Positions 9,035 through 47,452 of a DNA stretch of 64,000 nt are shown one piece after another. The stretch comes from Lepidodermella squamata (Eukaryota; Animalia; Gastrotricha). Under the pieces are notes generated by a model. It was not told the DNA's origin, made no database searches, and saw only the letters and a program-made list of their open reading frames with translations. The DNA is taken from the NCBI GenBank assembly GCA_047495785.1, contig JBLDXI010000001.1, forward strand, positions 2,976,001-3,040,000, written 5' to 3'. The translations under genes were made by a program, and so were the position numbers. Each line of letters starts with the position of its first letter. The first letter of the stretch is position 1.

Positions 9035-12000
9035 ATGCGGAAACCCTGCGCATTGGTGACAAGTTACGTCACCTTGCTGATTATCGAAAGTGTTCGAAGT
9101 CAATTTTTGAACCAGCCCTGCTTCTCACATGCCGACTGCTCACCGCCGAATTCGTTCTGCAGCCGGTCGCAAATGGCGGCGTGGAAGGGCGTGTGTTCTT
9201 GCCTGCCCGGCTACGTCGCCACAAGTTTGCGGACGTGCTCGAAGGAGAACCGGTTCAAATTAGCGCTTTCTTCCTCATCGGCGGTGAGCGTTCTCGGGAA
9301 GTCTTGTACGCGGCATGCGGATTGCACGGCGGTGGACATCAATTCCGTGTGCCAGCAAGCTCCGCCCGTTTGCAAGGAACCTAATGCATTTTGCGCCTGT
9401 CCAACCGGATTCAAAGCTGAAAACGGGAAATGTAGAAGAGGTAAGAATCTTTCTCAGAATTTCGCAGAGAAGCTATTCTCAAAGCCTCATGATTGAGCTT
9501 ACTTAAAATCAGCAATCATCCTTCATCCTTAAGAGATAAGTAAAAAATGGAGAAATTAGTTCTTTTCGGGGTTTTGCAATGGAGTAAGGATGCCTTCCTA
9601 GTATGTATAACTTCGAACTGGGGAAATACCAGGTTCCAAAACTTATGGGACATGCTCTAGAATTGCTTTTTATTTCCAGCTGTCCATTTGGGTCAACATT
9701 GTGGCGACGGATTTGTCTGCATCGATCCGCGGACGAAATGTGACTCAGCGACGCGAAAATGCGCATGTGATGCCTCTTCAAAGGTCCACCCTACAAATTC
9801 TAGCAAATGCGTAGCCAACACTTCGAAATCTGACTTTGGCAAGCACTGCGCTGTAGATGCTGATTGTTTCGATGGTCTCGAGTGTAGCAGCGGCTTTGAA
9901 TGCACCTGCCCGCCCGGGTTCAGCTACGACCCGACTAAGAAGATCTGTATGGCAAACGAATTCGGCGATCCTTGCACTGGAGATGATGATTGCTTTGCCC
10001 TGAAATCTTCCCGGTGCGATAACAAGTCTTTAACATGCGCTTGCTCAGAAAGGGCTAATCCAACCGTGGTTAGTATCAGTGGAACCACGAAAACAGTCTG
10101 CCTTCCTGTTCCCAGTAAGTTTTGAAGAACTTCAATCATTCATTTGCTTATCGATTATTTTCCTTTTAGGGACGTCTCGGCAAATGGGAGAATCTTGCGA
10201 TGAAAATGAGGGCGAAAGTGTTTTTCGGAACTTTTGCAGACCTCCTCTCACCTGCCAAGCTTGCTCATTGGACGGAACAACAAAAGTGTGTACAATGGCT
10301 TCAGTACCCTCGGTAGACACTACTGCGAAATCTCCTACAACCGCGAAAGTTAGTATACCGAAAGTTCTACTCGACAACAAGTGTCAGAGCGATTCTGATT
10401 GCCGCGATGTGAAGAACGCGGTTTGCGACACAGTTGCACTGAAATGCACGTGTAATAAGGGTTTCATCCGCGAGGACGACGATTTATGCATTCCATTTGC
10501 GGAAGATGGCCGAAATCTTACCGTTAAACCTAGTCTGTTCTTCAAGCAAGCAAGAGGGAAAGGATCTATTGGAGCGTCTTGCCTTACCAACGACGACTGT
10601 TCTGCTGTGGCTAAAGCTATTTGCGACCCGAATAGCAACTCGCCAAAATGCATCTGCCAGAAGGGTTTATTACCAGTTTCTGGCAATTGCGTTGAAAAAT
10701 TAAGCGTGACAACTGTTGCTGGATCTAGCCTTGGGCGGAGATGCGAATATGACGACGAGTGTCAGTCAACATCAAATGCTATTTGCGACCCCGAATCGGA
10801 TCAACCAACCTGTGTTTGCGATTCAGAGTTAGGGTTCGTCCAAGAAGGTCCAACCTGTGTTAAACCCAGAATTGTCGCCGCGGCCACGACACAAGTGCCT
10901 GTCGGTGCTGTTACCGCAGCTAGACGTCAATCTGGCTCGTTGGGCGATCCATGCGAGTATGACGATGATTGCAAGATTCCCAATTCTCTATGCGACTACG
11001 AAAGCCCCAAGCCTTCCTGCGTTTGCGACTTTGAATACGTAGCTTTAGGCAGTGTCTGTGTTAAAAAAGGCGCCACCATCACCGATAGGCCTCTAGCTGT
11101 CATCACCACCGCTAGGCCTCTAGCTGTCATCACCACCGCAAGGCCACAAGCTGCCGTAACCACTGCTAAACCCTCCTCAATCAAACTTGGAAGCGCATGC
11201 CAATACGACCCAGATTGCAACAAAGCAATTCCTAATGCAATATGTCTGTCTGACGGTACCAAGAAAACTTGCTCATGCGAGTCGGGTTTCTTAGCATCGG
11301 CGGGAAGGTGCATTGGAAGAGTGATACCCGCGATGACCACGGTGAAGTCAATTGTTGCTGCAGTCACCACTGCGAAACCTGTTGCCTCAATGCTGGGGAA
11401 AGACTGCGAGTACGACGACGATTGCACAGTGACTACGCCAAACTCGTACTGCGATGATACCCTCGTCTGTGTTTGCGAAACAGATTTCGTGTCTTCAGGT
11501 GGTCAGTGTGTCAAAGCAAGCTCCGCCCTTACTACAAGAAGACCTGGAGTAACCACAGCTCAGCCGAAAGTTATCGGAAAAGCATGCGAATACGATGATG
11601 AATGCCAGGATGTCCCTAACGCGATTTGCAATGTAGCCCTACCTAAGCCAGTATGCTCTTGCAACGTTGGTTTCGACGATTTCGGGAATATGATGTGCGT
11701 GAAGAAGGGCTCAATTACTACAGCGAAACCTTCGAAAATGCTAACCTTAGATTCTGCATGCAATAGGATTACAGACTGCGCGTCTATCACAAATGGTTAT
11801 TGCGACGATGCCGGTTATTGTTCCTGCAAGATTGGCTTCATGCCATCTGGACCGATGAATTGCAGCCCTGTTAAGCAGAATCAGCCTGCAGCATTACCTC
11901 TCGGAAGTGCTTGTAAAGTTGGGGTCGACAAATGTCAAACAGCTGATGCAGCCTGCGTGAATCAAATCTGCCAATGCCCAAGTGGTTATAAGGCCGGATT

Positions 12001-12732
12001 CAAGGACGATTGCGTCGAAGTTTCCCGGAAATCTTTCATCGACCAGGCTTGCTTAGACCAGCGAGATTGCTACTATAACATGTCTTGCTCGAACTACAAA
12101 TGCAAGTGCCCATCTGGCTATAAAGCTGTTGCGAATTTCGACTGCTCCCCGCGTTTGATTGGCGACATTTGTAGCATTGATAAAGATTGTCGCTACATCA
12201 GGAATGGCGTTTGTTTACGGCAAAGATGCGGATGCGATGTTAGCTACACTCAAACATCGCCTACGGAATGCATGGAGTCTGTATGGGTCGAGCGATCGGT
12301 TCAAGATACTGGTTTGTGGATTTTTTTATCCGAAATGACTGAAATTCAACTTTTTCGTTCTTTCAGTTGTTCAATGTTACACTGATGCTGATTGCCAAGG
12401 ACCTGGCATACCTCTGCAAGCAGTGTGCGGACCGAAATTGACCTGCCAATGTCCGCCGAACAGCGTTTTGGACAGCGACGGCAGATGTCAGATTTACCCT
12501 GCGAAAGATGGTTGGTTTAGCCTGTTTGAAATCCGGATTTCAGCTTCATTATTATTCCTTTTCAGTTATTGGATGGTCTTGTACATTCACGAAAGATTGT
12601 GGACCTGGCTACACTTGCGTCAAAGACCAATGCCAGTTGGCTGGTAAACAAGTCCTCAGTTCCGCGAATACTTTGCTTCAAAACTTGTTAATCATTCCAC
12701 TCACCTCAATAGTGTTACATTATTTGCTCTAA
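9035..12732 (+). CDS. Cys-rich EB-module-like repeat protein, paralog 1 (secreted, mucin-like linkers, probable GPI anchor)
   Basis: Exons 9035-9440, 9680-10114, 10170-12311, 12367-12510, 12566-12732. Signal peptide MRKPCALVTSYVTLLIIESVRS; many (L)G..C....DC....N..C....C.C..G(F/Y)......C modules; TTAKP/TTARP linkers; hydrophobic C-terminus with no cytoplasmic tail. Confidence 0.85.
11087..11167 (+). repeat. Coding 27-bp tandem repeat x3 (RPLAVITTA, RPLAVITTA, RPQAAVTTA)
   Basis: aggcctctagctgtcatcaccaccgc(t/a) twice, followed by a diverged third copy. Confidence 0.9.
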
Positions 12733-13597
12733 AAATGCTGCTATTATTTATTCCTAAAATCAACTCGTTTTTGTACGATGACCGCTGGCTGTGAAGCGTT
12801 TGACGACTCGGATTGAAGAGCAGAAACAAACCCGTGCCACCACATTATATCTCATTGTTGTTTGAAAAGATGTATATGGCCAGCACTCACGGCCCTAAAA
12901 TTATCGTTTGTCATTGTTGCTTGAAGCAGATTATGGTTGTTGCAAATCTTTATTTGTGTCAGATTTTTCTTCTTTACTCGTCATTTATACTTATTCAGTA
13001 TTCTTTATCGCTGCGGAAGCGCTCCTTTGGAGGATAACTGCGATTGCGCAATGAGAAGGCGAGAACAATAAAACTGCTCGATCAAATAAGCTCGGCTTCC
13101 TATAAAATGGACACACTGAATTGATTTTATAAATAAGTCAATCAAACCTAAGTCAAATGGTGGATAGAAATGAAAGAGCCTACCTATAAATTGACGAAAA
13201 CGTTTAAAAAAGACCTTAAGGCAAAATGCCGCTTAAAGCTGAGAAATGACTGATGGGTAGCACGAGCCTGCCGCTGGTTTCTCTAAGCCACGTGGGCTCG
13301 TGCGTCTCTTAAGCCGCTAAGTACCGTGAAAATTAATACTCAGCATGCTGAACACCTGTACTAGAAAGAAAACAGCGCTATGACGATTAAATATTCGTTA
13401 AAAGCTGGGCGCTGAGGCGGGGATTGAATTGCAACAAATAATTGTGATGTGGGCCTGGAGTTAAAAATAGAAGAAACAGTAAATTACAAAATCCCTTCAG
13501 CTTGAAAAGAAATCCTCGGCAGATCAGACCTACGCATGCATTCGGGTTTCATTTAATAGTATAACACTTCGTTATTGTTACTTTGAATCCCTGTGAA

Positions 13598-14907
13598 ATG
13601 AGAATTCTCGCCCCGATCCTTCTAATTTTGGCTCTGGTTTCTGTGGTTAAATGTCAAGATGGCACTGCAGATATCCCAGCCGGGAATACATGCTCAAGTG
13701 ATTCTGATTGCGAGCAAATTGAAAACGCGATCTGTGACCTGAGAAATGAACAGCCGCGATGTGTTTGCTCTACCGGCTACGTCATGAAATCGACCCGAAA
13801 CAGAAACGGTACACCATTTGTTCGTAGCTGTTCACCCTCAGACAAACCGAGGGTGAATGATTCGTCCAGAAAGAATAACACGGCGAAAAGTGACAGTTCT
13901 ATAGGATCAGCATGCACAACTGCTGCGGACTGTTCAGCGATAAGGAACGGGATGTGTGGTTCAAATAAAGTATGTGCCTGTAAAACGGGCTTTGTCACAT
14001 CTACGCCTACGCAATGCGTCCGAGCTAAGCCTGCTTCATCACCAGTTTGTCAAAATAACCTGTGCCCATTGAATGCTACATGCCGGCTGGATGTTGACAA
14101 GTGTCGAACTCGAGATGCCGTTTGCTTGAACGAGAGGTGCCAATGTCCTGCTGGGAAGAAACACGGCTTCAAAGATGACTGCATTGACAGTTCGATGAAA
14201 TCACTGTACAACCAAACCTGCACGAGTAACAGAGATTGCTACTACGACATGGTTTGCCAGGGGGGAATGTGCCAATGCTCAGTTCCTGGGCTAAAAGCGG
14301 CTGGTAATTTCGACTGTGTGTCACGCATGATCGGGGACGATTGCGACAAAGATGGCGATTGTCGAAATATCAAAAACAGTGTTTGTCTACAGAAGCGCTG
14401 CGGCTGTGGTTCGGGCTATACTCAGATATCAACAACAGAATGCAGAGAAACAAACTGGGCACTTCGAACACTCTCTGAAAATGGTATTTTTTATGGCTTG
14501 TTTCGTCTTTTTTTGAAATACAGCTGTTCAATGTGATACAGCTGTTCAATGTGCCAATGATGCTGAGTGCCAAGGTCCTGATTCGCCTTTACAATCAATC
14601 TGCGGCCCGTCCAAGACTTGCATCTGTCCTCCAAACAGCTCTTTGCAAGCTGGGAGGTGCACTTTCGCACCTGCCAATGATGGTAAGTAGATCTAGGCCT
14701 TCTACTCATCTGGAATCGAAAGTTAAACTTTACTTTTTAGTTACCGGTTGGTCCTGCTCAACTAACAAAGACTGCGGGAAAGATGCGATCTGCACTAAGG
14801 ACAAATGCCAAGCTTCGAATACAAAACTGATAAATGGCTCGTCGGTGTTGATTTTTCCTAATATGATGTTCTTAATTTCAATTTTGCTACTTTGTATTCC
14901 TGAATGA
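13598..14907 (+). CDS. EB-module-like Cys-rich protein, paralog 2 (short form, probable GPI anchor)
   Basis: Exons 13598-14483, 14524(or 14542)-14682, 14741-14907. Signal peptide MRILAPILLILALVSVVKC; shares the GFKDDC..KS..DCYY..GNFDC..IGD core and the last two intron positions with paralog 1. Confidence 0.85.
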
Positions 14908-15563
14908 TGATGATTATTAAAATACTTCAGATAAACGAAGTCCATATTTTCAGCGAAAGGCTTGCCATTTGTTACAGCCATGTTGTAGTAGAATTATCCA
15001 AGCGTATCATCTAGTCTTTATAAATTTCCCATTTCTCATATCCTGTACATTTATTTTCTAAAAGTAGCTGCTTTCATCCTGCTGTTGCGAAGATGAAATC
15101 ACTTTTGAAGTTGAGAGACCTGGATGTTTTTCTAACGAAATTCCTCTTACTGCGAATCTTCAATGGCTAGATGTCCAAGGGCCAGGCCGGTATGCGTAAG
15201 CTTCTTAGAACCCTCCATGAAAAAAACATATTAGGTCAACCTGTTACCACTCCGATAAAATCCTGATTATCCATCAGCGGCGAGCCTTGTGGTATAGTTA
15301 ATACGGAATGATGAAAATTCCTCCGCATGAAGGCCCAGAGCGTAAAAATAAAGCTGCGAGAGGAGAGCATTTCATAAACAATAGCAGAAAAAAATGAAAT
15401 CTTAACAGCTTATGAAACAATCTCTTGAGCGACAAAAAAAGATTATCAATGAGCGAACAAAGAAAACTAGTCATCATTTTCTCGATAGCCGTACGTAGTA
15501 GTATATTGGAAGCAAAAGGCAGGGGTCAGTTTAAACCCCTGGGTTATACTATCACCGCAAAAA

Positions 15564-16857
15564 ATGCGCAGTATTTATGTGATTGCCCTCGCACCTCTAC
15601 TAGTCGCCCTTGTGAACAGCCAGGTAGCAGACGACGACGAAGAAGCCTCCGCCGGTAATTGGTGCGATAGTAACGAAGATTGCAAGAATATCGACAATGC
15701 TGCATGTGACTTGGAAAACGACCCTCCTCGATGTGTTTGCTTCACTGGCTACGTCATGAAATCGACAAGAAACAGAAATGGAGCTCCATTTGTCAGAAGT
15801 TGCGTGACCAAGCCAAAAGTGAACGAAACCACGAGAAGGAACAACACAGATACTACTAAGAAGAACGTCTTGTTAGGTTCATCCTGCACTGCACTGAAGG
15901 ACTGTTCATCAATTCGAAATAGCATCTGCACCGCCAGAGTTTGTGCTTGCTCTGCCGGTTACGAAGCATCTGCACCAGCAAATTGTACCCAATCGAGGCC
16001 ATTAGCTCCAACGCCAACTGGCGGTCTAAACAGTCCATGCCTTGCCGGTTCGAAGTGCAGATCCCGAGATGCTATCTGTACGAACGGAGAGTGCCAGTGC
16101 CCACCGGGCAAGAAACCAGGCCTCAAGGACGATTGCATCGATTTCTCACGAAAATCCCTTTACAACCAAGCATGTGCCAATCAGCTGGATTGTTTTTACA
16201 ACATGACGTGTTCTAAGGGCAAGTGTGGTTGTGATATTGGTTATAGAGCTTCAGGCGATTTCGAATGTGTCCCGCGATACGTTGGCGACGTCTGCGAGTT
16301 CGATCGCGACTGCACTTCCGTTAAAAACGGCATTTGCCTTAGAGGAAAATGCGGTTGTGGCGACGGCTATTGGCCGAGAACAATCTCGGAATGTCAAGAA
16401 TCAATTTGGGCTGAGCGGCGTTTACCATCAGATTCACGTAAATTACAAAAATTAACTGAGGTGTGTTTTTATATTTTGATTCAACAGAAGCGGTGGTACC
16501 CTGTTTCAGTGATGTTGACTGTGGTGGCCTCGATGCGCCTTTACAATCCATTTGCGGCTCTAGTAAGACCTGCGTATGTCCACCAAAAAGTGAGCTCATA
16601 AGCGGGAGATGTGTAGCTTCCCCGGCGAAAGATGGTAAAGCTCTTTTGAGAGTCAAATTTTATGTATTAATATGTAACGTTTTTAAGCTTCCGGATGGGC
16701 TTGCGCAGTCGACAAAGATTGCGGGAATGGATTCGAATGTGCCAAAAACATTTGTCAGGTTTCAACCAAGAAAATTATGTCCAGCGGTTCAAAGCTAACA
16801 ATTCAAAATCTGGTGGTCATTCCGCCTACTCTTTATGCGATATTTCTCAGCCTGTGA
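15564..16857 (+). CDS. EB-module-like Cys-rich protein, paralog 3 (closest to paralog 2)
   Basis: Exons 15564-16437, 16488/16491-16634, 16688-16857. Shares TGYVMKSTRNRNG.PFVRSC with paralog 2; last exon GWACAVDKDC...LVVIPPTLYAIFLSL*. Confidence 0.85.
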
Positions 16858-17177
16858 GTTAGGATGAAAAATAAGCCTGGATATTTTTAGGAATAGTTGA
16901 GATGTTGCGACGGATTGTTGCTATTCTTTTCCCTACATTTTAGAGTTGCGATTGTAATAAATCAGTTGTAAAGTTTTCACGTTTCAGTCTTTTGTCCCCT
17001 GCTTTTTTTGGTAACAAGATAATGCTGTTATTTCATAGCCTTATCAATTTAGCGTGCCGGCAATGATAAGAGCAATTCTTGGAATTGATGGCTACCGCCT
17101 ACTTTTGGCTGAGGTGATAGTGAATAGTAAGTTTGAACGGTGCACTTTTAACACTTCAATGATAATTTCACGTTAAA

Positions 17178-20100
17178 ATGGCTTCATCAGAGTTCAAATT
17201 TCGTTTTAGACATCTATACACGCATCATTCAGGTATGAAATAGCCTTGAAATTTGTAAGTTAGGTAAAAGGGTTTCCATTAACAGCGACTTCAAGTCCGC
17301 TTTCAGCAGAGGAGACTGTTAGTTCCCTACTTGCAAATCCACAAGCTGTCAATGCCAATACTCCCTGTGAAATAGTGGTATCAGAGAAAAACGGGCGTCT
17401 CGAAGTCTACGCGCATTCGCCACCTGAGTCACTTATCGAGGCATTTGAATTCACCCATATTAGTGAGGTGAAATGCCTTAGAACAGATCATTCGAACCCA
17501 TTGCTGATTGACATCTTGGCTATCACGGTCAAAGAAGATACCCACCTATTTTCACCGAGATCGGGGGTTCAGGCAGCTGAAGTTGCTGCTAAATTGAATG
17601 AAGTCATTAAGCAATCGGTTTCTCTGAATCCTCGGAAGTCTGATTACACGAGATTATACGCATCGAGAAGGAGCAGTACTATGGCTGGAAGTAAACCTCT
17701 AAAAATCAAACTCGAGGTTCCAATCGAAACAGAAACGCTGAATAAATGCCTTGAGGAAGTCGAATGGTTTTGCAATCAACTCATGCCTGTGGTAAGTTTC
17801 TCAGTGTTCAGCACGCCATATTCGTAACATGTTTTTAATCAGCATATCCAGGAGGTAAACAACATTGCCACTTTAAATCAGCAATTGCGAGACCTGGAAT
17901 CTAAACTTGGCTCGAAAAGTTCATCGACTCGTAAGAAAGCCGAGACTGAAAAGCTGCAAATACAAGCCCAGCTCGGTCAACTTCAGACGGCAACCAAATC
18001 AACAGCCGAAGCTTACGTCAATATTGTTCAAAAAATCAGGCTCGCGTATTTCCTAACTGCTAGATTGAAAGCACAGCTGAGCGCTCAACAGCCACCCTCA
18101 TACGAGCCAATTCTGCAGTCGATAACAGCGAGATTTCTGGCTATAGCGAAGTTCACTGAAGCTAGATTTCCTTTCCAGGGTAGCCTGGTCAATGCTATTA
18201 AGATTCCAATGTTCAATCGAGATGTTCTTACCGCTCTTTCTGAACATTTCTTTCAAATGGACCTGGCTACTAAAGGCTTCTGGGAATCGCTTGGTCCAAA
18301 CTGGAAGGTAGCTATGTAAGGATTCCTCAACAATAATTTTCCTACTAATTTATAGCTTTTGTAATGCAGAGAAGATTGGACGGGTGACATCGATTTCTAT
18401 CAGCCAACATTCCGCCAAAATCCATCCCAGCCCATTTTACTCCGATTTTTGGACCCTGAAGTTATCAAGGCCTGGTTGGTAGCAGTTCGCGACAGAGAGA
18501 AGGCGGCGTTGGCAGCAGAAAGGATGAACTCGATGGTTCAAGATAGCTTCAAACAAGAGCTCATTTCCGATAAAAGAACTGTCTGTGTAATCACCTCACT
18601 CGAAGGCATCGACCCATCGCAAGATTTGGCTGTAGAGATGGGCGAGATCCTAGAGTACTGCGCTTTGCTGAAGGGCGGCATTGTTCGAGTGAGAAACGCT
18701 ATCGGAGAGGTCGGGACACTTCCTCAGGAGGTTGTAACCAAACTAGAGGAACAGAGACAGTCCACGTCTATACCAAAGGAAGTGGAAAGCATTGACGAAG
18801 CCAAGGAAGACACGTTTGTAAGGCAATTGAAAAAAGAGAACAAACGGATTGCCATCGTGTTGAAAGAATCGAGCAATGCGGATGGCTTTCACGTTCTGCC
18901 TGGGCAAGCTGTTCATATCATCGAACAAGGGGAGTCGGATAGCACGGTAGTAAATGCTGATGGAAAAGCAGGGGTCATACCAAATCGATCCTTCTTCTCG
19001 CAACCAATGATAAAAGACACGTTTGATCTACTGCGAGACGACAGCTCAGGTTCGCCATCCAAAGGATCGGGGGTTCAGTCAAAGGCAAGGTAATTCATTG
19101 GCATGATAAGTAAAACAAATAGCAAATTTTCCGTTCACAGGAGTAGCCGACTTGCAGATTTTCAAACAATTTTCAAACAAGAACTTGAAGAAGCCCGTAA
19201 GGTTGTAGCAGTAGCTCTGACAAAATTTAAAGACGAGGCTGCTGGATTCGAAATCGAGAAAGGAGAAGTTCTGGAGCTCACGGAAGATTTTCGAGACGGA
19301 AACATCCGAGTCGTCAACTACGACAGGGTTTCTGGGATTATTCCCAAATCGAAGGTAGTCATTTCAAAGCCTAAATCTTCAAACAGCGTAACAGCGGAAG
19401 CGTCGTCGGTAAAAGAATCAGAAGAGCGTTCTATTTCCAGGTAAGACTCTATGGAATTTACCAGTGCAACTTTACTTTTGCTTCAGCCAAAGGAGTTCGA
19501 CTTATGCAGAACCAGCGTCAAAACTTCTGGATTCATTGCAGAATGCTTTCAAGACAAAACTAGAGAGGGAAGGCAAGTACATCGGGGTAGCGATCAATTC
19601 AACCTGGGATGAAAAACGAGTCATGTTTATCGAACGTGGTGAGATTTTGGATGTGGTCGATGAATACGAAGATGGAATGGCTTTGGTAGCGAACTGCGAG
19701 GGCAAACAGGGGGTGGTCGAGGCGGCAAAGCTTATCATCACACCTCCTCCTCAAAAACCTGCTGCAGCTCCTTCGCCGGATGACAAGAAGGAACTCGAGA
19801 GTGTTATCAAGAAGTTAAGTGGGAAAATGGAGGCGATGCAAGCTGCTAACGAAGCTAAAGCCAAGGCGATGGCTATTGCTGAAGAAGCTGCGCGAAACAG
19901 GCGGCGACTTGAGTTGGAAAATCAGCAGCTTCAAGCCGCATTACGCGAGCAGCAGGAAGTTGCAAGAGCCCAGGAAGAGCTGCGGAAGTTACAAGAAGAA
20001 AATGAGAAGAAAGAGAGACGACTGAAACGAGCTGAATCGAAGAAGATTGTCAAACCAGCCCCTGCCCCAGCCCCACAAATATCGTCTCGAAAGGCACCGG

Positions 20101-21711
20101 GCGTTCAGGATGCTTACAAAGCTAAGTTGGAAGCTAAAGGAGCTAGATTTTGCGTCGCTAAATCTGCGCAACAAGATGGCAATGGATTCTCGGTGGAGGA
20201 AGGAGAGTTTCTTGAGGTTAAGCTCGATATCGGCGAATACTTACGTGTTCAAAATGTTGATGGTGGCATCGGCAATGTAGCTAGTAAAGAGGTTACTGAG
20301 ATCAGCCCAGGTCGTAGGGTTTCCAGGGTTGAAAAGCGAACCTCCACTGCTGAACAGCCAAAATCTGTCCAGTTCTCCGGGCAATCCAGCGATCCAGACA
20401 ACGCAACTGTCGAAATATCAAACAGAGCTACCCCGTCTGATCTAGACAATCCGACGGTGGAGATTGCTCAAAGAGCCAAGTTGGCGAATCGTTACCCGGC
20501 TGGTTCGAGGCGCTTCAAAGACTACCAAGACCATGAAGTGTTAGGAAGCGGATCTTACGGCGTTGTGATTCTATCAACCAGAAAATCTGACCGGCAACTC
20601 ATGGCTATCAAAGAAGTTGCCTTCAAATATGGGGATAATGACAAGACGCGGCAAGAAGCTGTAATCCTTCAGAAATGCTCCCATCCTAACATTGTCAAGT
20701 TTCTAGGGACATTTGAAGGTTCGTAGGACACATTTTGGTCAAAATACAATACAACTACAGTTTTCCTGTGTAGAGAACAACTACCTTTTCATTGAAATCG
20801 AGTACTGTGCAAACGGTGGGTCCTTTAATGGTATCAGGTTATTCAAAAGTAAATTCCCTTAATAAAGGTGCTCTTTCCAAGTTGATTGTCGAAAAGGCCA
20901 AAAACAATAATCCCTTCGACACTCAAGAGGTACTGTCATTAAAAGGTTCAAGCTTTCTGATACGCTGCTAATGCTTTCCTTTTACAGATCAGTAAATGGA
21001 CCAATCAATTAGCAAATGCACTGAGCTATTTACACTCTAAGAAAATCATACACAGAGACGTCAAGGCGGAAGTAGGAAATTGCATCATATTAGGATACGT
21101 TAGGATACCCTTTAAACTTTTCAGAACATTTTTGTTACTAATCAGTCCGATGTGAAGTTGGGCGACCTGGGAGCAGCAACTGACTTGAATGGGTATGTAA
21201 ATGCTTCAACCTTCGATAATTCGATCATCATATTCCCCCTTTCCTCAGAACGATTCAGATGCTAAAGGCGAGAACATTTATTGGCTCTGTTCCAAATATG
21301 GCGCCCGAGCTGCTGAGGGGCGATCCTTACGACGAGAAAATCGACATTTGGGCTCTTGGCGTTGTCATCTTTCAGCTTGCAAGCTTTAGCCAACCTGTGA
21401 GTGTTCTGAACTCGAGAAAATTCGATCCAAATTTTGCAATTTTTTCACAGTTTGGGACCGATTTCATTCAAATTCACAATAACATCTTTGTAGCGTTCGT
21501 TTTACTTTTGATTTTTTTGTTAAATTGTTTAAATATTTCACTTTCCGAAAATAGGAAGAAGAAGCCACTGTTACCTAAAGCTTACCAGAACGATAAAGCT
21601 CTAGTGAACCTGGTTGAGGCTTGCTTGAGCTTCGAAGCTAAATCGAGACCGCCCGCCAGCCTTATTCTTCAACACGCCTTTGTCAAAACCGGAGAAACAA
21701 CGGACTTGTAA
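17178..21711 (+). CDS. EPS8-like PTB/core + five SH3-like repeats + coiled coil + NEK-like Ser/Thr kinase (~1296 aa, 13 exons)
   Basis: Exons 17178-17232, 17286-17791, 17843-18315, 18370-19089, 19141-19440, 19487-20718, 20774-20815, 20868-20929, 20988-21071, 21125-21192, 21249-21396, 21451-21494, 21555-21711 sum to 3891 nt in one frame. EPS8-core-like motifs: ETLNKCLEEVEWF, VQKIRLAYFLTARLK, FWESLGPNW..EDW..FYQPTF. Kinase motifs: GSGSYG, AIKE, HRDVKAEN, KLGDLG, APE, DIWALG. Confidence 0.8.
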
Positions 21712-25300: not shown

Positions 25301-26148
25301 CGGCCATTTCTCGGGGAATGTACCATTTCTTCATATTTTCACATTTTTTCGGTCCTAATCTCACCAGAAACCAATTTAGAAGGTCGAACCAGTTTTCAGA
25401 ATTTAGAGATAATTTGCCCTGATGAATCATGCAATTTTCAAAATTCGATTTTCTTAAGTTTTGAAATTTTCAGGCCTCGGAATTTTTCTTAATTTTTTCA
25501 ATTTTTTATTTTAGGCGTTCGAGTATGCAACATTACGAGAAAAGTTCGAACAGCAAGCTCCGCCCATCGAAATACAGCCACCGAGCGAGCATCGGAACTA
25601 CTCACCCTGTCAGCTCAAATGAATATCCGGCGAATAGCTCGGCTCGAAGGTCCCTCAACAGTGCTGATATCAGCCCGAAAGTGTTGTCGAAAGCTCTTCA
25701 CGTCACAACAATCCTAGCCTCGCAATCCCTGCAATCACCCCCACCCGCCCCGCCGCCGACCCCGTCGCCGTTCTCGCAACTCGACCTATTCGCACAGCAG
25801 TCATTCAAACGGCAGCTTCAAATCGACGGCAAGCGATTTTGCTCCGTTACAAATGCGTTATATGCACATCGCAACATAGCCTCCTCGGAATTATCTGTCT
25901 GCCAGGGTGAGATATTGGAAATCAGTGCTGATTTAGGCAACGGCATGTGGCGAGTTCGAAATGCTGACGGTGATACGGGCGATATTAACAGTGCCGCGTT
26001 GACTGAGTTGACGCCTCGGCGGAGCTCGCAAACCGACTCGCCGAAATGGACTACGAAATCTCACTTTAACGGTGGAATTAGGCCTAAAATGACGAATATT
26101 CCAACGGAATTCGACCAATTAAAGTTAAGGGTTGCTCCTAAAAATTGA
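22345..26148 (+). CDS. Putative two-exon coiled-coil + Pro-rich + EPS8-type SH3 protein without kinase
   Basis: Exon 22345-22529 (ELRQILDENEELKRRIEQLK) joins in phase 2 to 25515-26148, which encodes PPPAPPPTP and QQSFKRQLQIDGKRFCSVT..ELSVCQGEILEI..WRVRNADGDTGDI. The SH3 exon is well supported; the join across a 3-kb intron is inferred. Confidence 0.6.
23463..23710. mobile_element. hAT-type MITE (248 bp) with perfect 8-bp TSD
   Basis: TIRs CAGTGTGCGA / TCGCACCCTG (9/10); TSD CCCATCAG at 23455-23462 and 23711-23718; internal GGGGGGGATCATCCCCCCC hairpin. Confidence 0.85.
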
Positions 26149-32250: not shown

Positions 32251-34666
32251 ATGTTACAATTTTCGAGAATTATTTGGTTGGTTTTGTTTCCTAGCTTGGT
32301 AGAATCCGATAATGGGCCAATAGTACTCAAATCTTCTGGCAATGGACGTCGGCAAGAAATCAAAATTCCTGTTATCACCAACTTGGGTAGGTTATTATTT
32401 TTCACCAGATTTTAGTATGTAATATCAAAAATTAAATAATTCCAATACAGACGGCATTGATGGACTCGGCCCTTTTGAGACTGAGGGGGTTCAGATTGCT
32501 CTAGATGGGATTAGAAATTCGACTAATCTGTTGAAAGACTACGACTTGACCATCGAGCTATTCGATGATTCGTGCGATTCAGCCGTGGGCATTGAGCTTG
32601 CTCTCAAAATTCTAAATGACGAAGAAAGCAATTATTTCCCCATTATCATCGGCCCCAACTGTCCTGCTTGGTTGTACACCGGCCAGGTTCTGCCTTTTTA
32701 CAACTTTGTCGGCGCTTCGACGTGGGTCGGAAGTGTGGGAACGTCTTTCTTCGGCTTACTAAACGCATTCCCAATGGTCTATGAAGCTTTACCGCATTTC
32801 ATAGCTTACAACAAATGGAATCGCGTGTTTCTCATTACCGAACTTCTTACTAGTTGGTTGGGATTGGAGTCTTTCTTGCAAGAAAGCTCTGAAAACCTGA
32901 ATATCACTCTTTCAGCCGTAGTCAAGGTTGAATATGTTGGAACATCTCTTCCTAGCTTTGAGTCCTTTGAATCATCGGTTAAAGAGCTCGCGTCTTATGA
33001 TCCACGAATAATCATAGTGAATTCAAATTTCCCGGGGGCTATGGCTTGTGAATTTTACAAGCAGGGCCTGTACGGACCGCATTATGTCCTCCTGCTTGTT
33101 GGCTTTGCATATTTTACCCCGGAGGTCGAATTTAGGCCGCCTTGGTGCAAAGAGGAGATGATACTTGAAGTTCTGGAGTCAGTCTTCTACTTCTCCTACG
33201 GTAAGAAACTCGACATCGAGCCCGACGAGGAAGATGTCGTGGGATTGACTGGTCGTCGATTTGATGAGCTATTGCGAGCAAGGTCTTCCTCCAGTGAGCA
33301 CAGGTCTATTTGGTTTTTCTTTCGGGATTTCCCTTACACTGAAGTTCTTGCGACGGCTGTGGTTCTAAACCAAACAGATCAAGACCTAAGGAGCAAAGGA
33401 GCCGGCAACCTTTCGGAATGGACGACATCTGGGGGACAATTCAAAGCTAACGGAAGCTTTATCGCCAATATTCTATCTGATAATTTTCTCAATTTACGAA
33501 TGAAGAGCTTCACATTAGACGACAGAGAGCCAATATCTAGCCTGAGTGGTATCACCGCCTTTTATCAAGTCCGAGTGTTTGACAATGAAATTCGGACGAT
33601 CCCAGTTGCCAAAGCTGACTCAACTTTCAGCCCGTCCCGGTTTACTGGAGGTCCCGGTCTCATCAAATGGCGAACTCTAGACGGATTAGCGCCGTCGGAT
33701 AGCGTTAAAGTAGTCCAGAGTCGAAGACCAATATTGAGTAATCCATCCAACATTACGTTTGTCATACTTGCTGGGGCTTTACTGGTGGTAATTTGCTTGG
33801 CTGTTATCCTTTACATGAGAAATCAGAGCTCCGAGACGATTAAGAAAACATTCCCGAAAATGAATTACGGCATTTTGGCGGGTAATTTATTCATAGTAAG
33901 CTCCATTTTCATTCTTCCACGTGAGCTGGCTGAGGACCCGAGTGTTCGATGCATGGCTGCATCTTTCACTATTCTTATCGGATATTCCTTAATCTCATGC
34001 TGTCTCCTTGCTAAGTTGCATGTTGCACTCAAGGTTTGCCTGAAAGCAGAGAGCAGAAGATCAACCCCGGCAAGAGGCTTAAGAATACAATCGATTGATA
34101 TCAGGAATCTGGAGAGATCGACATCAACGTCTCTAATCGCCGCTCTTGCATTCTGCTGTTTCCAAGTCGTCATCATGGCCATTTGGTTCGGCATAGAGCC
34201 TATGGAGAGTTATGCTTACCTAGTGAAGGAAGAAACAATTCACGCAAGTCTTATCAATCAGCAAATCAAAATATCCTGCCGACTGTCCACTAGATCAATT
34301 CTTTCCCTCGGATTTGTCGCATACTTTGGCGCCAGCTTTGCTCTTCTTTACTTGCGAACCCTTTTTAGCCTCTTTTCTTTGAGAAAAGCAGCAGTCATCA
34401 GCGTTGTGGATTTGACTTCAACTCGTGCTGTATCTTACACTATGGGAATAGCTGTTCTCGCCGGTTCCGCTGTTATTGTTATGTTAATTGTATCAAGCAA
34501 CGACCCAGGCGATTTCATGCTAGCCGTTGTCATAGTATTGGAAGTCATCGCAGCCCTCCTGTTTGCGATTCTATATGCTCCAAAGGTAAGCATTGATTAC
34601 AAATCCTCGAGCCACTCTGTTCTCAAACATCACTACATGCAGATTCGCAGGGGCTGGCTGCTGTAA
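32251..34666 (+). CDS. Class C GPCR, GABA-B-receptor-like (paralog A)
   Basis: Exons 32251-32386, 32451-34585, 34643-34666. Signal peptide; Venus-flytrap motifs (LLKDYDL..DDSCD, IIGPNC, RIIIVN, ACEFYKQGLYGPHYV); no Cys-rich domain; 7 hydrophobic helices with TM3 C..GYSL..LLAK, TM4 ..WFGIEP, TM7 ..YAPK; ends IRRGWLL*. Confidence 0.85.
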
Positions 34667-39947: not shown

Positions 39948-42413
39948 ATGAATTTGATCAGACTATCACTTATATCCTTTAGCTTCATCTCGAACATCAT
40001 CTCAACGGGCGGTCAGAGTTCTGTCTGGCCTCGGACACTGAAAGCTTCTGCTAATCAAAAGACCAACTCGAATCGCCGCTCTTTAAAAATAGCGGTCATC
40101 GGAAATTACGGTAATTCCTCCGAGATACAGCCAGAATTCTGAATTAAAAACTGTTAACAGGTGGAAGTGTGAATCCTGCTGGTCCTTTCGTTACTGATGG
40201 TACACAAATCGCACTGGACCTTCTTAGTAATACAACAGATCTCCTAGACGACTACAACTTAGTGGTTGAGCTTTATGATGATATGTGCAACATCGCAGTT
40301 GGGAAAGACTCGGCGTTTAAAATTTTTGAGAATCCTGCTGGGGATTATTTTCCACTCATCTTAGGTCCACACTGCCCCGGATGGATACACACTGGCAGAG
40401 CTCTTCCTCACTACAACTTTGTCGGAATGGCAACATGGGTCGGCAGTGTGGGCAAATCTTTTTTCGGTCTCATGACGTCCGTCGCAGTTATGTACCGTAC
40501 TCTCCCCTATTTCATAATTGCTAACAAGTGGAACCGCATTTTTCTAATAACTGAGCTAGTAAGAAGTTGGCGAAATCTTGAGACCGCTTTTCAAGATGCC
40601 CTATTAGAAAGCGCAAATATTACGTTGAGTGGGGTGGTCACGATAAATTACGAGGGCACCTTGGTCCCAAGCTTTGATTCTTTCACCGAGACGGTTAGGG
40701 AACTGGCCCGTTTCAACCCTAGAGTCATTGTGATTCACACAAACTTTGCTGGTGTTGTAGCCTGTAATCTCTTCAAATTGGGTCTCTATGGGCCTCATTT
40801 TGTCTTGTTAATGCCGGGAAATGTTTATACCCTGCCAAACACGGCTTTCAGGCCACCGGATTGTACTCAGGCTATGATTTTTGAGGTTTTACAGTCCGTA
40901 ATATACTTCGCGTACGGTAAAAAGTTGGATATTTACCCAGATGAGAAGGATCTACTGGGTCTTTCAGGTAGAGATTTTGACAACATGCTGCGAGCCCGAT
41001 CTGAAAAACCTGATTCGAATACGCGATGGTTTTTCCACCGCGATTGGCACTACACCCAACTTGTAGCAGCGGCTGTCGTTTTGAACCAGACCGATGAGCA
41101 GTTGAAGCGAGAAGGGAAGGGATATCTAACTGACTGGGTCTCTTCTAGCGGAAAATTTAAGCAAAATGGTAGCTACCTGGTTTCACTTTTGCGGGAAAAT
41201 ATTGCGAACTTGAAGATGAAGAGTTTCACCCTAGATGACACAGAACGTATAGAAAGCTTTAGAGGCCTCGCGGCCTTCTACCAAGTCCAGGATAAGGCTA
41301 GAGAAACAGAACAACTGTCTTATGACACGCGCTTGAAAGCAGTACCGATTGCGAGCGTAGATTCCCGCTTAAATCCACCGAGATTCATAAATGGGCCAGG
41401 CTTACTGAGGTGGCGCACGCCTGATGGACATGCTCCCCTCGACATGAAAGTTACAGTTACCCTTATAGAGCCTGTCTTATCACCAACATCGAACATCATT
41501 CTCACAGCTCTCGCTGCGACTTTTATAACTTTAAACACGGCAATATTCGCGCTATACGTTAACAAGTTGAGGCGAAACGTAGTTCGGAAATCCATACCTG
41601 GCGCAAACATTGCAATTTTATTGGGGAATGGTATGCTTGTTACAGCTATCTTCGTTTTCCCGCGGGAGTCAAACCTTCAAGCAAGAATTCACTGCATGGC
41701 GGCATCCGCGTTGAGTCTTCTCGGTTACTCAACCATTTTTGTCGCACTAGCAGTCAAGTTGCACATAGCGATTGTTAGAAAGAAATCCATTATTCGCCAT
41801 AGTTCTACGAGATCGAGATCGAACTCTGCATTTACGTTGGATAGTTTGACTGAGTTCAGGAAAAACGTCAAAAATGGGTTGTTTGCAATTATCGCCTTCC
41901 CTATTGCTCTTCTTTCCGTAATGATTGCTTGGTTTCACTTGGAGCCAATCGAAACTTACTCATACATTGGTGACATCGAGGTAGTTCATGAGAGCCTTTC
42001 GTTACAGCATGTTAGATTCGGTTGTCAACTGAAGCAAATCTCGATTGTTTTTATTGTTTTCTACGCATTCATTTTTGCCACATTGTATTTGCGCGTCATC
42101 TATTTCGTTTACTACTCGAGAAGGCTCAAGTTGGATCACATAAATGATCTTCAGCTCACCCGAATCGCGGCGTATAGTCAAGGAATATTGGCCATCGCTG
42201 GATCTTGTGTTATTCTGGCCTTTCTGCGTGATGCGGATCCTGAAAAGCTGTTCGTAGGGATATCAGCGGTAATACTGGCCATAAGCTCAATTATCTTGGG
42301 TATCCTATTCATCCCTAAAGTGTGTACAATTTTTTCAAAGTGTTTGATTATATTTTTCACAATTTTCATTTACTTTTTACTATTAGCTGCGCCGCGGTTG
42401 GTTAATTCAATAA
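39948..42413 (+). CDS. Class C GPCR, GABA-B-receptor-like (paralog B)
   Basis: Exons 39948-40110, 40161-42319, 42387-42413. Colinear with paralog A (YNFVG..TWVGSVG.SFFGL, YGKKLDI.PDE, MKSFTLDD, GPGL..WRT.DG.AP.D); spliced end LRRGWLIQ*. Confidence 0.85.
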
Positions 42414-43650
42414 CGGTAATGAATTTAGCGCTGCTTGAAGCAACATTTTCCCTGAATCAGCGATTACGAATTACGAAGCACCTTTTTATTGTTCTCGATG
42501 TTGATGCTGTTATAGATGTTCTGCGTGATTTGGGGAATAAAGTACATTTGGCTTAATCTTAATTGAAACTGGTTACTTTAAAAACAATTGGGCGTTATCT
42601 ACTGTTGTCTTTTCATATGACTATCAAGCAAACGATAGTGTCAGTTGTCAGTTGGGAACGGCTTATATTCGTGTATCGCACATCTCAAGCGTAACAGATC
42701 AAGCGTCGTGTATACTAGCCGCACAGGGTACAAATTATGAACATTCATTCTGTATGAAACGAATGACAAAACTCCTTATCCAGATATTGATGTGATTTTA
42801 GAGCTTGATGCATGCATTTTCGCATACCCCGTCGAAATCTATCGTGAAATCTATTTTTCAAAAGCTAATGGCTGACCCTGGACATTCAATTTAGACCGCC
42901 ATATATTTGAGGCATGTCGTTTGTTTACCCTACTAATCATTCTCATCATAACAATCTAATCAGTAATTGACTTTTCAAAATGCCTAGTTTTGATCTTTAG
43001 AGGTATAATTCTTCAGATTTAGAGGCCGATTAACATGTGAAAAGTGGGGTTAGAAAATTCGAGATCGAAAAACTGATTAATAACATCTAGGAATCCAAGA
43101 ATCAAGTCAACACCCTTTTGCATTTTGCTGGAGAATTCAGAAAATACGCAAAACCCTATTTTTCACTTGTTACGGTCATCTACTTTTCTATTGACCTCTA
43201 ACCTCTGAAACTCATTTTGAGGCTGCCAGCTGTCACTCATTGGAGGCCGACTTTATCATCGGTTTTAACATGAAAGGGCAGTACGTGGCAGTAAGGGAGA
43301 AACTTTGTATGGTGGATAAAAAATTAAAACAGTTTGCTCGACAAATCTTACTCAGAAGTGTTATACCTGTATATAGGCTTGGCATGTCGATTTCCAATGT
43401 CTTAAAAAAACTGCCAGTTTATTCGAGACGGGCTTTATTCCACAGGGCCGAAACTCCCTTCAATTCAGGGCCTCCCTATTAGTTTTTCTTCGTCCCGCAC
43501 AAACTTTAGGCCTCACCTAAAATGTCACTAACACTAATCATCAACAAATAAAAGGATTATCATGGCGATAATGCCTCGTGCCAGGAAGTCTACGACATAT
43601 CCACCTGAAATGCATTTTTACTCAAACACTGCGCATTTTGATCATTCAGC

Positions 43651-46297: not shown

Positions 46298-47452
46298 TCA
46301 GCAATACTGATACCACGATAGTTCGCCAACTTCAACGAAGCAGAAAAAATGCACAGTCATCATAACAAGCGTAATTGATGCCAGTGAAACAGCAATCACG
46401 TCGATTAGCCTGGCTCGCGTTATCCTGAAACTGATCTTCCAACAAGGTTGAACCTCAGCACAGAGCCATCGCTTATATGAGAGGCACAAGCTTGACATAG
46501 CCATGGCGTAGATCATGCAAATGGCTGACAAGAAATTGCACGCCAAAGTGTAATCCGTCAGGAAGGTTGTTGTAGGCTTCGCAGGAATTCGGTTCGCAAT
46601 ATCCATCTGAGTTACTGTGAGCGAGAGGAGAATAGTCACCATATACGCTGTCCTGTCACCATACCGTGGGCTCAGCAGGAATCCAGCTAGCTGCAGGCAC
46701 GAAAGGAAAATTATCGGCAAAATAATATTCAGTTCGAAGTAAATGGGATTCCTTGCAATGACGAGCTCGAAGCTAACTGCTGCCCAATTAGCCATAGCGG
46801 CTTCTTTGATAGCGGCATTCCATAATTTTAGTCTCCACTCACTCCCAACAGTTTCGGCCCATTCCGTCATATTTGTCTTGTACCAGACACTTGTCAGTTG
46901 AGACGACGATTGAATTGAAAAAATGAACCTGCAACGAGCAGTGTCGTAAGGAAACTTTCCGTAATCCATGTCACAAGCGGTTTTAAAGGACCCAGAAATT
47001 CTCAGCTGAAATTTGAGCTCACCATTCTTCTCATTTCTAACTGTTAGTCGCCGCTGAAAACCAATCTCCAATCCATATGGACCTTTTGAGTTCACGTGTG
47101 CGATAAAAGGAGTCCAAATTAGGTCCATGTTTCCGATGAACATCGCATTCAGCCTCGACGCGTTGTAATTCGGGCAGTTTACCACCCATTCGAAGAATAC
47201 AACTCCAACGAGACTCATTGATTCTTCGTCGTCACTGACCTGATCAAGAGAGTCCGCGAGGAAAAAAGCCGTGAAAGCAAGTAGCGGGCATGAATTTGTT
47301 ACAAAATCACTGGAGGTGCAAAGAGGGGTGACTGACTCGGCGGAAACATCGGGGCACTGTTCGATCAATTCCAAGCTTCTGAAATTGTGTATCTGACATG
47401 AAGCAGACAGGATCCTTGAAATAAAAATTAAGAAAGTTTCAATATGTCGCAT
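46298..47452 (-). CDS. Intronless Cys-loop ligand-gated ion channel subunit (divergent nAChR/5-HT3-like, non-alpha)
   Basis: Signal peptide, IWTP, Cys-loop CDMDYGKFPYDTARC, EW, R.PIYF..NII.P (M1), M2 GDRTAYMVTILLSLTV, M3, very short M3-M4 loop, M4 after ARLID. Confidence 0.9.
   Translation of the reverse strand: MRHIETFLIFISRILSASCQIHNFRSLELIEQCPDVSAESVTPLCTSSDFVTNSCPLLAFTAFFLADSLDQVSDDEESMSLVGVVFFEWVVNCPNYNASRLNAMFIGNMDLIWTPFIAHVNSKGPYGLEIGFQRRLTVRNEKNGELKFQLRISGSFKTACDMDYGKFPYDTARCRFIFSIQSSSQLTSVWYKTNMTEWAETVGSEWRLKLWNAAIKEAAMANWAAVSFELVIARNPIYFELNIILPIIFLSCLQLAGFLLSPRYGDRTAYMVTILLSLTVTQMDIANRIPAKPTTTFLTDYTLACNFLSAICMIYAMAMSSLCLSYKRWLCAEVQPCWKISFRITRARLIDVIAVSLASITLVMMTVHFFCFVEVGELSWYQYC

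Follow-up and report, generated by a model that had tools for sequence, protein, structure and literature searches.

An EPS8-like gene of the gastrotrich Lepidodermella squamata with five SH3-like units and a C-terminal protein kinase domain

The gene considered here lies in a stretch of 64,000 nucleotides from the gastrotrich Lepidodermella squamata (NCBI GenBank assembly GCA_047495785.1, contig JBLDXI010000001.1, positions 2,976,001 to 3,040,000 of the forward strand), which as a whole we call the window and to which all positions refer unless another contig is named. It occupies positions 17178-21711 (+) and joins in one reading frame a front part of the EPS8 family, five SH3-like units, a long helical stretch and a protein kinase domain; this EPS8-like/SH3/kinase fusion gene is referred to below as gene 1. 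In its layout it is a compact animal-type gene, with coding blocks between GT..AG introns of 46-60 nucleotides (nt). Its model was built by enumerating all GT/AG choices near the changes of frame and keeping only those that left the frame open, a procedure that yielded 16 near-identical solutions, among which the one with the best splice sites consists of 13 GT-AG exons of compatible phase splicing to a single frame of 1296 amino acids (aa), closed by a TAA stop at 21709-21711. An earlier reading of the same DNA (the original prediction), which had proposed 13 exons and a frame of about 1296 aa, is matched exactly, and every motif that it quoted is in place. The exons and the features inside them are listed here, X1 being a transcriptome-like sequencing run to which we return below.

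17178..17232 (+): exon 1, with the ATG; aa 1-18, including FRFRHLYT; its only support is its likeness to the start of the canonical EPS8 paralogue
17286..17791 (+): exon 2; aa 19-187, PTB-like region followed by the first part of the EPS8 core (LNKCLEEVEWF)
17843..18315 (+): exon 3; aa 188-345, EPS8 spectrin-like domain (Pfam PF22975)
18370..19089 (+): exon 4; aa 345-584, in which the EPS8 core ends (EDW..YQPTF) and is followed by a helix and by SH3 units 1 and 2
18533-18751 and 18800-19009 (+): SH3 units 1 and 2 in exon 4, as matches to a hidden Markov model (HMM) of the units
19141..19440 (+): exon 5; aa 585-684, SH3 unit 3 at 19157-19372
19487..20718 (+): exon 6; aa 685-1095, one open reading frame (ORF) with SH3 units 4 and 5, helical stretch, linker and kinase N-lobe
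19533-19748 and 20100-20309 (+): SH3 units 4 and 5 in exon 6
19773-20057 (+): helical or coiled-coil stretch in exon 6, between SH3 units 4 and 5
from 20523 (+): kinase N-lobe in exon 6, with GSGSYG, AIK and the alpha-C Glu
20774..20815 (+): exon 7; kinase beta4-5; X1 loose ends at 20718 and 20772, joint 20814/20867
20868..20929 (+): exon 8; kinase alpha-D region; GT..AG joints 20814>20867 and 20927>20986, each at depth 10.2
20988..21071 (+): exon 9; kinase alpha-E and HRDVKAE; Pkinase positions 101-127, E 1.8e-7; joint 21071>21125
21125..21192 (+): exon 10; kinase, the N of HRDxKxxN and then DLG; Pkinase positions 128-148
21249..21396 (+): exon 11; activation segment, APE, DIWALG; Pkinase positions 154-194, E 2.8e-9; joint 21396>21451
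21451..21494 (+): exon 12; kinase alpha-G region; GT..AG joints 21396>21451 and 21494>21555
21555..21711 (+): exon 13; kinase subdomain XI, KSRP and the TAA stop; Pkinase positions 226-263

In the spliced product the motifs characteristic of EPS8 proteins follow one another as FRFRHLYT (aa 8-15), LNKCLEEVEWF (170-180), QKIRLAYFLTARLK (250-263), FWESLGPNW (333-341) and EDW..YQPTF (346-359), and those of the kinase as GSGSYG (1038-1043), AIK (1058-1060), HRDVKAEN (1152-1159), DLG (1172-1174) and APE (1199-1201).

Two public sequencing runs contain the window, X1 and a DNA run from a differently labelled organism, X2. The former behaves as a transcriptome, its depth being zero at the intron positions listed and in the flanking intergenic DNA. 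The GT..AG sites predicted for introns 5, 7, 8, 9, 11 and 12 are precisely those at which contigs of X1 skip these introns, and the loose ends of further contigs bridge introns 4 (19090, 19139) and 6 (20718, 20772), such that RNA contigs confirm eight of the 12 introns (4-9, 11 and 12); the junction evidence that the original prediction had named as its first check is in this respect available, the joint of exons 5 and 6 included. At this joint a single contig links the two exons in frame over a GT..AG intron (19437>19484), and others cover stretches along exon 6. Exon 6 itself is uninterrupted, a single ORF taking in SH3 unit 4, the helical stretch, unit 5, the linker and the kinase N-lobe, and hence no splice is needed to connect the SH3 array with the kinase. 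For introns 2 and 3 the support is indirect, both junctions being crossed by the EPS8 domain and by the alignment to the ORF of a paralogue; intron 2 in particular is supported because the alignment of the EPS8 core to the uninterrupted ORF of that paralogue crosses the junction of exons 2 and 3, and at the three intron 3 positions listed the X1 depth is zero. A contig spanning 21659-21767 extends the 3' untranslated region to about 21767. Because the depth vanishes on both sides, upstream (where the neighbour ends near 16797) as well as downstream after about 21770, with zero past about 21950, gene 1 is separate from its neighbours.

The remaining arguments require three further loci, all related to parts of gene 1.

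contig C1, about 3,105,800-3,115,600: canonical EPS8 gene, 113 kb downstream of gene 1 and 65.8 kb past the end of the window
53409-55508 (-): gene 2; about 530 aa in 9 exons (model), with an N-terminal acidic coiled coil, two SH3 units and a kinase that is the sister of that of gene 1
25525-26148 (+): single-exon ORF of 207 aa; a Ser/Pro-rich start with PPPAPPPTPSP, then one Trp-keeping helix-SH3 unit (unit HMM 1.4e-15)

The existence of gene 2, a stand-alone gene of coiled coil, two SH3 units and kinase 32 kb away, raises the question whether the locus might be two adjacent genes wrongly merged, an EPS8-like adaptor in exons 1-5 and an SH3-coiled-coil-kinase gene resembling gene 2 in exons 6-13, all the more so as the RNA contigs are short, none spans the locus and the 5' end is devoid of RNA coverage. 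We regard this as highly improbable: the X1 contig at 19437>19484 joins exons 5 and 6 in frame, loose ends join exons 4 and 5, no stop codon, start context or coverage gap separates the two parts, and the phases fit a single frame. The comparison with X2, whose contigs come from a related organism and are 90-99% identical to the window, concerns the frame itself. Among the differences listed (40 of 120), all four indels are intronic (introns 3, 8 and 12) and 22 of the 26 exonic differences are synonymous, the other four being nonsynonymous, while in exon 6, with the kinase N-lobe, every listed difference is synonymous. Such a distribution is typical of a reading frame under constraint, and gene 1 is a single expressed, selectively constrained, 13-exon protein-coding gene.

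EPS8 proteins are described as non-enzymatic adaptors, built of a phosphotyrosine-binding (PTB) domain, the spectrin-like core, one SH3 domain and a SAM-like end that caps or bundles actin. The canonical EPS8 gene of this genome starts with VDHLFTT and a weak PTB match, followed by the EPS8 core with a second occurrence of PF22975, some ten helix-SH3 units separated in places by coiled coils, a Trp-bearing SH3_1 domain and the SAM_3 effector domain (PF18016, 7.1e-6); an EPS8 with many SH3 units is in itself unusual. Gene 1 shares the front of this order. Its exon 3 matches the EPS8 spectrin-like domain (PF22975) with E 2.2e-13 and 51.2 bits at a cut-off of 27, the tail of exon 2 has a weak EPS8_2nd match (profile positions 3-20), and aa 120-381 are colinear with the core of the canonical paralogue (blastp 4e-23 and 2e-10), the match of 4e-23 to the core ORF being a single high-scoring segment pair that spans the junction of exons 2 and 3. 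Over the core as a whole the two proteins are 28% identical (233 aa), and exon 4 reaches 53% over 36 aa against the corresponding exon of the paralogue, the EDW/YxPxF piece. The EPS8-family N-terminus put forward in the original prediction thus has both a profile match and a colinear relative in the same genome. Sequence searches of the PDB with exon 2 alone and with exon 4 alone returned nothing significant, and a look-alike search of the ESM Atlas with exon 3 gave sub-threshold matches only. As regards the opposite end, the SAM-like actin effector domain (PF18016) is absent from exons 6-13 by Pfam, which encode the kinase.

The five SH3-like units between core and kinase are related to each other and to EPS8. 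An HMM made from them detects both units of gene 2, the one in the ORF at 25525-26148 and the units of the canonical paralogue, including its canonical SH3. Run against all PDB sequences, the five-unit profile places the SH3 of EPS8 (7tzk) first (1.4e-4) and the helically extended SH3 (hSH3) of ADAP second (2.5e-4), all 38 matches bearing the names of SH3 proteins; with an 18-unit profile the EPS8 SH3 scores 2.8e-12. The AlphaFold2 model of unit 3, calculated from an 18-row alignment with a mean predicted local distance difference test (pLDDT) score of 95.8, consists of an N-terminal helix (2-12) and a beta barrel, and Foldseek again returns 7tzk on top (template-modelling scores 0.71/0.79, root-mean-square deviation 1.6 A). 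Profile and model together argue that the five units are helix-extended SH3 folds derived from the SH3 of EPS8. Weak Pfam hSH3 matches occur in gene 1 and one above the cut-off in gene 2, and the helix packed on the barrel in the predicted structure of unit 3 recalls the hSH3 of ADAP/FYB, but in sequence the units are closer to the SH3 of EPS8. With identities of 16-43% to one another the units go back to old duplications. In the alignment all five lack the ligand-site Trp and the ALYDY-type aromatics, and units 4 and 5 lack the conserved Pro as well; owing to the loss of the Trp and of these aromatics, the units are unlikely to bind ordinary PxxP peptides.

Units 4 and 5 are separated by the helical stretch, in which no Pro or Gly occurs over aa 798-874 and 77% of aa 781-875 are E, A, K, R, L or Q. 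Its heptad contrast is 0.70 against 0.51 in shuffled sequences, 16 of 500 shuffles reaching the observed value, while a coiled-coil homodimer prediction returned a score of 0.00, which gives no verdict either way. Five SH3-like units, and a coiled coil between the fourth and the fifth, had been predicted at the outset; the former are what profile and model recover, and the latter corresponds to a Pro/Gly-free, heptad-patterned helical stretch of about 80 residues. The linker of about 70 residues ahead of the kinase contains a duplicated 13-aa motif, encoded at 20391-20429 and 20439-20477 (+) and reading DPDNATVEISNRA and DLDNPTVEIAQRA, which is absent from the linker of gene 2.

The kinase domain forms the C-terminal end of the product (aa 1031-1296). 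Pieces of the Pfam Pkinase model (PF00069) follow one another colinearly from position 1 to 263 in exons 6, 9, 10, 11 and 13, the N-lobe in exon 6 covering positions 1-68 with E 8.7e-11, and they score higher with this model than with the Tyr/TKL model. All the motifs named in the original prediction (GSGSYG, K, HRDVKAEN, DLG and APE) are found in the spliced sequence, and the catalytic set is complete, comprising the Gly loop, the AIK Lys, the alpha-C Glu, the HRD Asp, the catalytic Asn, the DLG Asp, APE and the Arg of subdomain XI. From these residues it is apparently an active Ser/Thr kinase. A pseudokinase or structural domain, the product then being a large adaptor only, might be suspected from the replacement of the DFG Phe, DLG standing in place of DFG, from the atypical activation segment GSVPNMAPE and from the long branch on which this orphan kinase stands, its identity to known kinases being 33-38%. 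Yet all residues needed for catalysis are in place, the listed X2 differences in the N-lobe are synonymous throughout, and NEK6/7 carry DLG and are active, so that we consider a loss of catalysis unlikely.

The classification of this kinase is less straightforward than its recognition. Among the proteins compared, the best full-length matches of the spliced domain are of the NEK1/5 type with 33-38% identity, headed by P0026 (37.5%; a protein whose relatives go by the names NEK1, NEK5 or NIMA-related), with vertebrate NEK1 at 33%; the MAP4K of the genome itself is about equal per residue to these NEK-type matches, and with the genome's NEK-type genes single exons (38-49 aa) reach identities of up to 51%. 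In two maximum-likelihood trees (LG+C20) the gene 1 kinase and that of gene 2, which are 43-44% identical, are sisters (100/98 and 96/97), and both trees place the pair between the starred STE20 clade and the NEK side, without including it in the starred NEK1/4/5 clade. A starred branch of the second tree (100/98) shuts the pair out of the STE20 clade. Approximately unbiased (AU) tests reject neither placement, the log-likelihood difference being 1.9 (p 0.41) with NEK and 18.8 (p 0.18) with STE20. As the panel of the trees held NEK, STE20 and some unnamed kinases only, the two are described as an orphan pair with NEK affinity rather than as NEK kinases, with NEK-like as the best guess from the sequences. 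The NEK-like label of the original prediction accordingly keeps its basis in the full-length matches, without being confirmed by the trees. Membership of STE20 had first been suggested by single exons, for which the best PDB matches are MAP4K3 and MST1/2 (N-lobe) and MAP3K12, MST4 and MARK (exon 11), NEK1 ranking near 57; such pieces do not discriminate, and this assignment was set aside in view of the starred branch of the second tree, the AU test not rejecting it. With NEK kinases gene 1 shares the NIF[LV] signature after HRDxKxxN and a coiled coil in the protein, as well as a KLGDLG sequence which we take to resemble that of NEK6/7. It differs in that its kinase is C-terminal, the NEK layout being an N-terminal kinase followed by a regulatory or coiled-coil tail, and in the activation segment, GSVPNMAPE against GTPYYxSPE.

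Gene 2 carries the kinase motifs HRDVKAEN, KLGDLG and APE, and its kinase exon boundaries coincide with those of gene 1 at least at two places, between HRDVKAE and N and between LNG and T. The first of its SH3 units keeps the Trp, lies above the Pfam cut-offs for SH3_1, SH3_10 and hSH3 and is closest to the canonical EPS8 SH3 (42%). Exon-level searches of the 121-Mb assembly revealed no further close copy of the gene 1 kinase. That the order of SH3 unit, linker and kinase is kept in both genes, that unit 5 of gene 1 has one of its closest counterparts in unit 2 of gene 2 and vice versa (39%), and that the gene 1 linker contains the duplicated 13-aa motif, might suggest that the kinase-adjacent unit and linker serve above all to inhibit the kinase intramolecularly, as in Src, Abl or MLK3, the EPS8 front being a release switch and not a localisation device. 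The units lack the PxxP-binding aromatics and the linker motif is not common to gene 2, and in our judgement such an arrangement is improbable. Mixed-lineage and Src/Abl-type kinases also combine SH3 modules, a zipper-like helix and a kinase in one chain and provide a precedent for SH3-mediated regulation; they differ from gene 1 in domain order, in that its SH3 units are EPS8-derived and degenerate, and in that its kinase is matched better by the Pkinase than by the Tyr/TKL model.

Compared with EPS8 and EPS8L proteins, gene 1 has the spectrin-like domain above the Pfam cut-off in the same motif order, an N-terminal region with homology to the part of the canonical EPS8 of this genome in which the PTB lies, and SH3 units nearest to the EPS8 SH3 in profile and fold; it lacks the SAM_3 end and the Trp-bearing canonical SH3 and instead has five degenerate helix-extended units, the long helical stretch and a C-terminal kinase, being by prediction enzymatic. 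With the canonical EPS8 of the same genome it has in common the PTB-like start, the EPS8 core, repeated helix-SH3 units and interspersed coiled coils, but there about ten units precede an SH3_1 and SAM_3 end, where in gene 1 five units precede the kinase. Because the canonical gene already possesses about ten units, gene 1 looks like a duplicated 5' part of a multi-SH3 EPS8. The simplest history would be that such a gene was duplicated nearby and that one of the copies lost its canonical SH3 together with its SAM-like actin effector end and gained in their place the kinase common to gene 2. The original prediction had proposed that the actin end was replaced and the SH3 multiplied; the kinase does stand in the place of the SH3_1 and SAM end, whereas the multiplied units occur in the canonical gene as well and are not peculiar to the fusion.

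A phmmer search with exon 6 against 1.84 billion representative proteins gave matches to the kinase N-lobe only, its SH3 and helical part having no relative there. In the literature searched no EPS8-kinase or SH3-NEK protein is described. One fish protein with NEK-like kinases and SH3 (P0071) was considered as a precedent and dismissed, since it has two kinase domains and a C-terminal SH3 and hence a different architecture. The expectation that the architecture would prove undescribed agrees with the databases and literature searched, in which no EPS8-kinase combination was found; we rate gene 1 as a new domain architecture assembled from known parts.

Taken together, we favour, with a probability of about 0.7, the reading that EPS8-derived front, SH3 array, helical stretch and kinase constitute a scaffold-tethered Ser/Thr kinase. 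Several points weigh against it. What the RNA provides is a series of short contigs (at most 420 nt) rather than a single long molecule, X1 coverage is nil over 16982-17363, which includes exon 1, and none of the joints listed gives direct support for introns 1-3 and 10; with contigs so short and the 5' end uncovered, an internal start may yield a shorter SH3-kinase product. No ortholog of gene 1 was found beyond the two sequenced organisms, and the library searched with exon 6 does not contain the gene 1 protein itself, which, because this self match was lacking, indicates that the lineage is absent from it. The PTB domain (PF08416) has no Pfam match at E<1 in gene 1, nor did PDB searches with exon 2 alone or with a three-row profile including the paralogue return a PTB. 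On the other side, the paralogue has a Met about 10 aa ahead of an xxHLxT motif, resembling exon 1 of gene 1, and aa 43-107 align to its PTB-region exons with a z of 8.1 (none of 2000 shuffles being as good), one of these exons having itself a weak PF08416 match (0.0054). An AlphaFold2 model of exon 2, made from the single sequence without an alignment, has a pLDDT of 36 and is unusable. Of the PTB-like start described in the original prediction, FRFRHLYT and the likeness to the PTB region of the paralogue stand, but a PTB is not shown by Pfam, PDB or AlphaFold; the domain is unproven, its basis being similarity to the paralogue.

On the reading as a scaffold-tethered kinase, the EPS8-type front, and perhaps the SH3 array, would place the kinase where EPS8-type scaffolds assemble, at the membrane or the cortical actin, and the product would act there as a tethered enzyme and not as an actin capper. 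The degenerate SH3 units could serve as spacers or, like helically extended SH3 domains, as non-canonical binding modules, possibly for lipids or partners, and the helical stretch could allow self-association and trans-autophosphorylation. Targeting to microvilli or cilia is pure speculation. A wider proposal, which we put forward tentatively and hold to be rather doubtful, is that an EPS8 scaffold has here turned enzyme, NEK-related orphan kinases on EPS8-derived SH3 arrays phosphorylating components at EPS8 sites such as the tips of actin protrusions and receptor complexes; if true, a pathway that elsewhere has adaptor output only would possess a direct kinase output. The presence in one genome of three related genes, the canonical EPS8 of about ten units, the kinase-ended copy and the short SH3-kinase relative, amounts to a natural experiment in the re-wiring of a cytoskeletal scaffold, albeit in a single poorly sampled invertebrate lineage with frequent domain shuffling in its genome. 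It offers degenerate helix-extended SH3 folds for the study of their ligands and an orphan kinase whose substrates could reveal what is brought together by scaffolds of the EPS8 type.

The ORF at 25525-26148 has no kinase exon visible downstream and could be a small adaptor or a remnant. Other genes of the window, together with the NEK-type genes found elsewhere in the assembly, are the following.

10079-16601, 56539-57846 and 62105-63391 (+): five long EB-module ORFs (PF01683, E 1e-13 to 9e-33), a local Cys-rich cluster of secreted type
32531-34666, 40169-42556 and 50641-52785 (+): three long single-ORF class C G protein-coupled receptors (GPCRs; ANF receptor and 7tm_3)
46298-47452 (-): ligand-binding domain of a Cys-loop channel
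C21:938381-941524, C2:2218189-2221401 and C54:3974168-3977302, and also on C55, C3 and C31: NEK-type kinase genes (HRDIKxxNIFL, KLGDFGIA)

The several NEK-type genes point to an enlarged NEK repertoire in this genome, and the one at C2:2218189-2221401 has an intron directly after HRDIKAQ, at the same place as in gene 1. With EB-module proteins, class C GPCRs and Cys-loop channels, the other genes of the window fit an animal. The MAP4K of the genome is 50-55% identical to its best matches, the best named of which are from molluscs, and so low an identity suggests a divergent, poorly sampled animal. The EB-module gene immediately upstream of gene 1 has in its 3' part a 53-nt GT..AG intron (16633-16687) that is spliced in X1 contigs, and ends near 16797; between it and the covered part of gene 1 lie about 570 nt to which no RNA contig extends. 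Further Cys-loop genes lie just past the canonical EPS8 gene.

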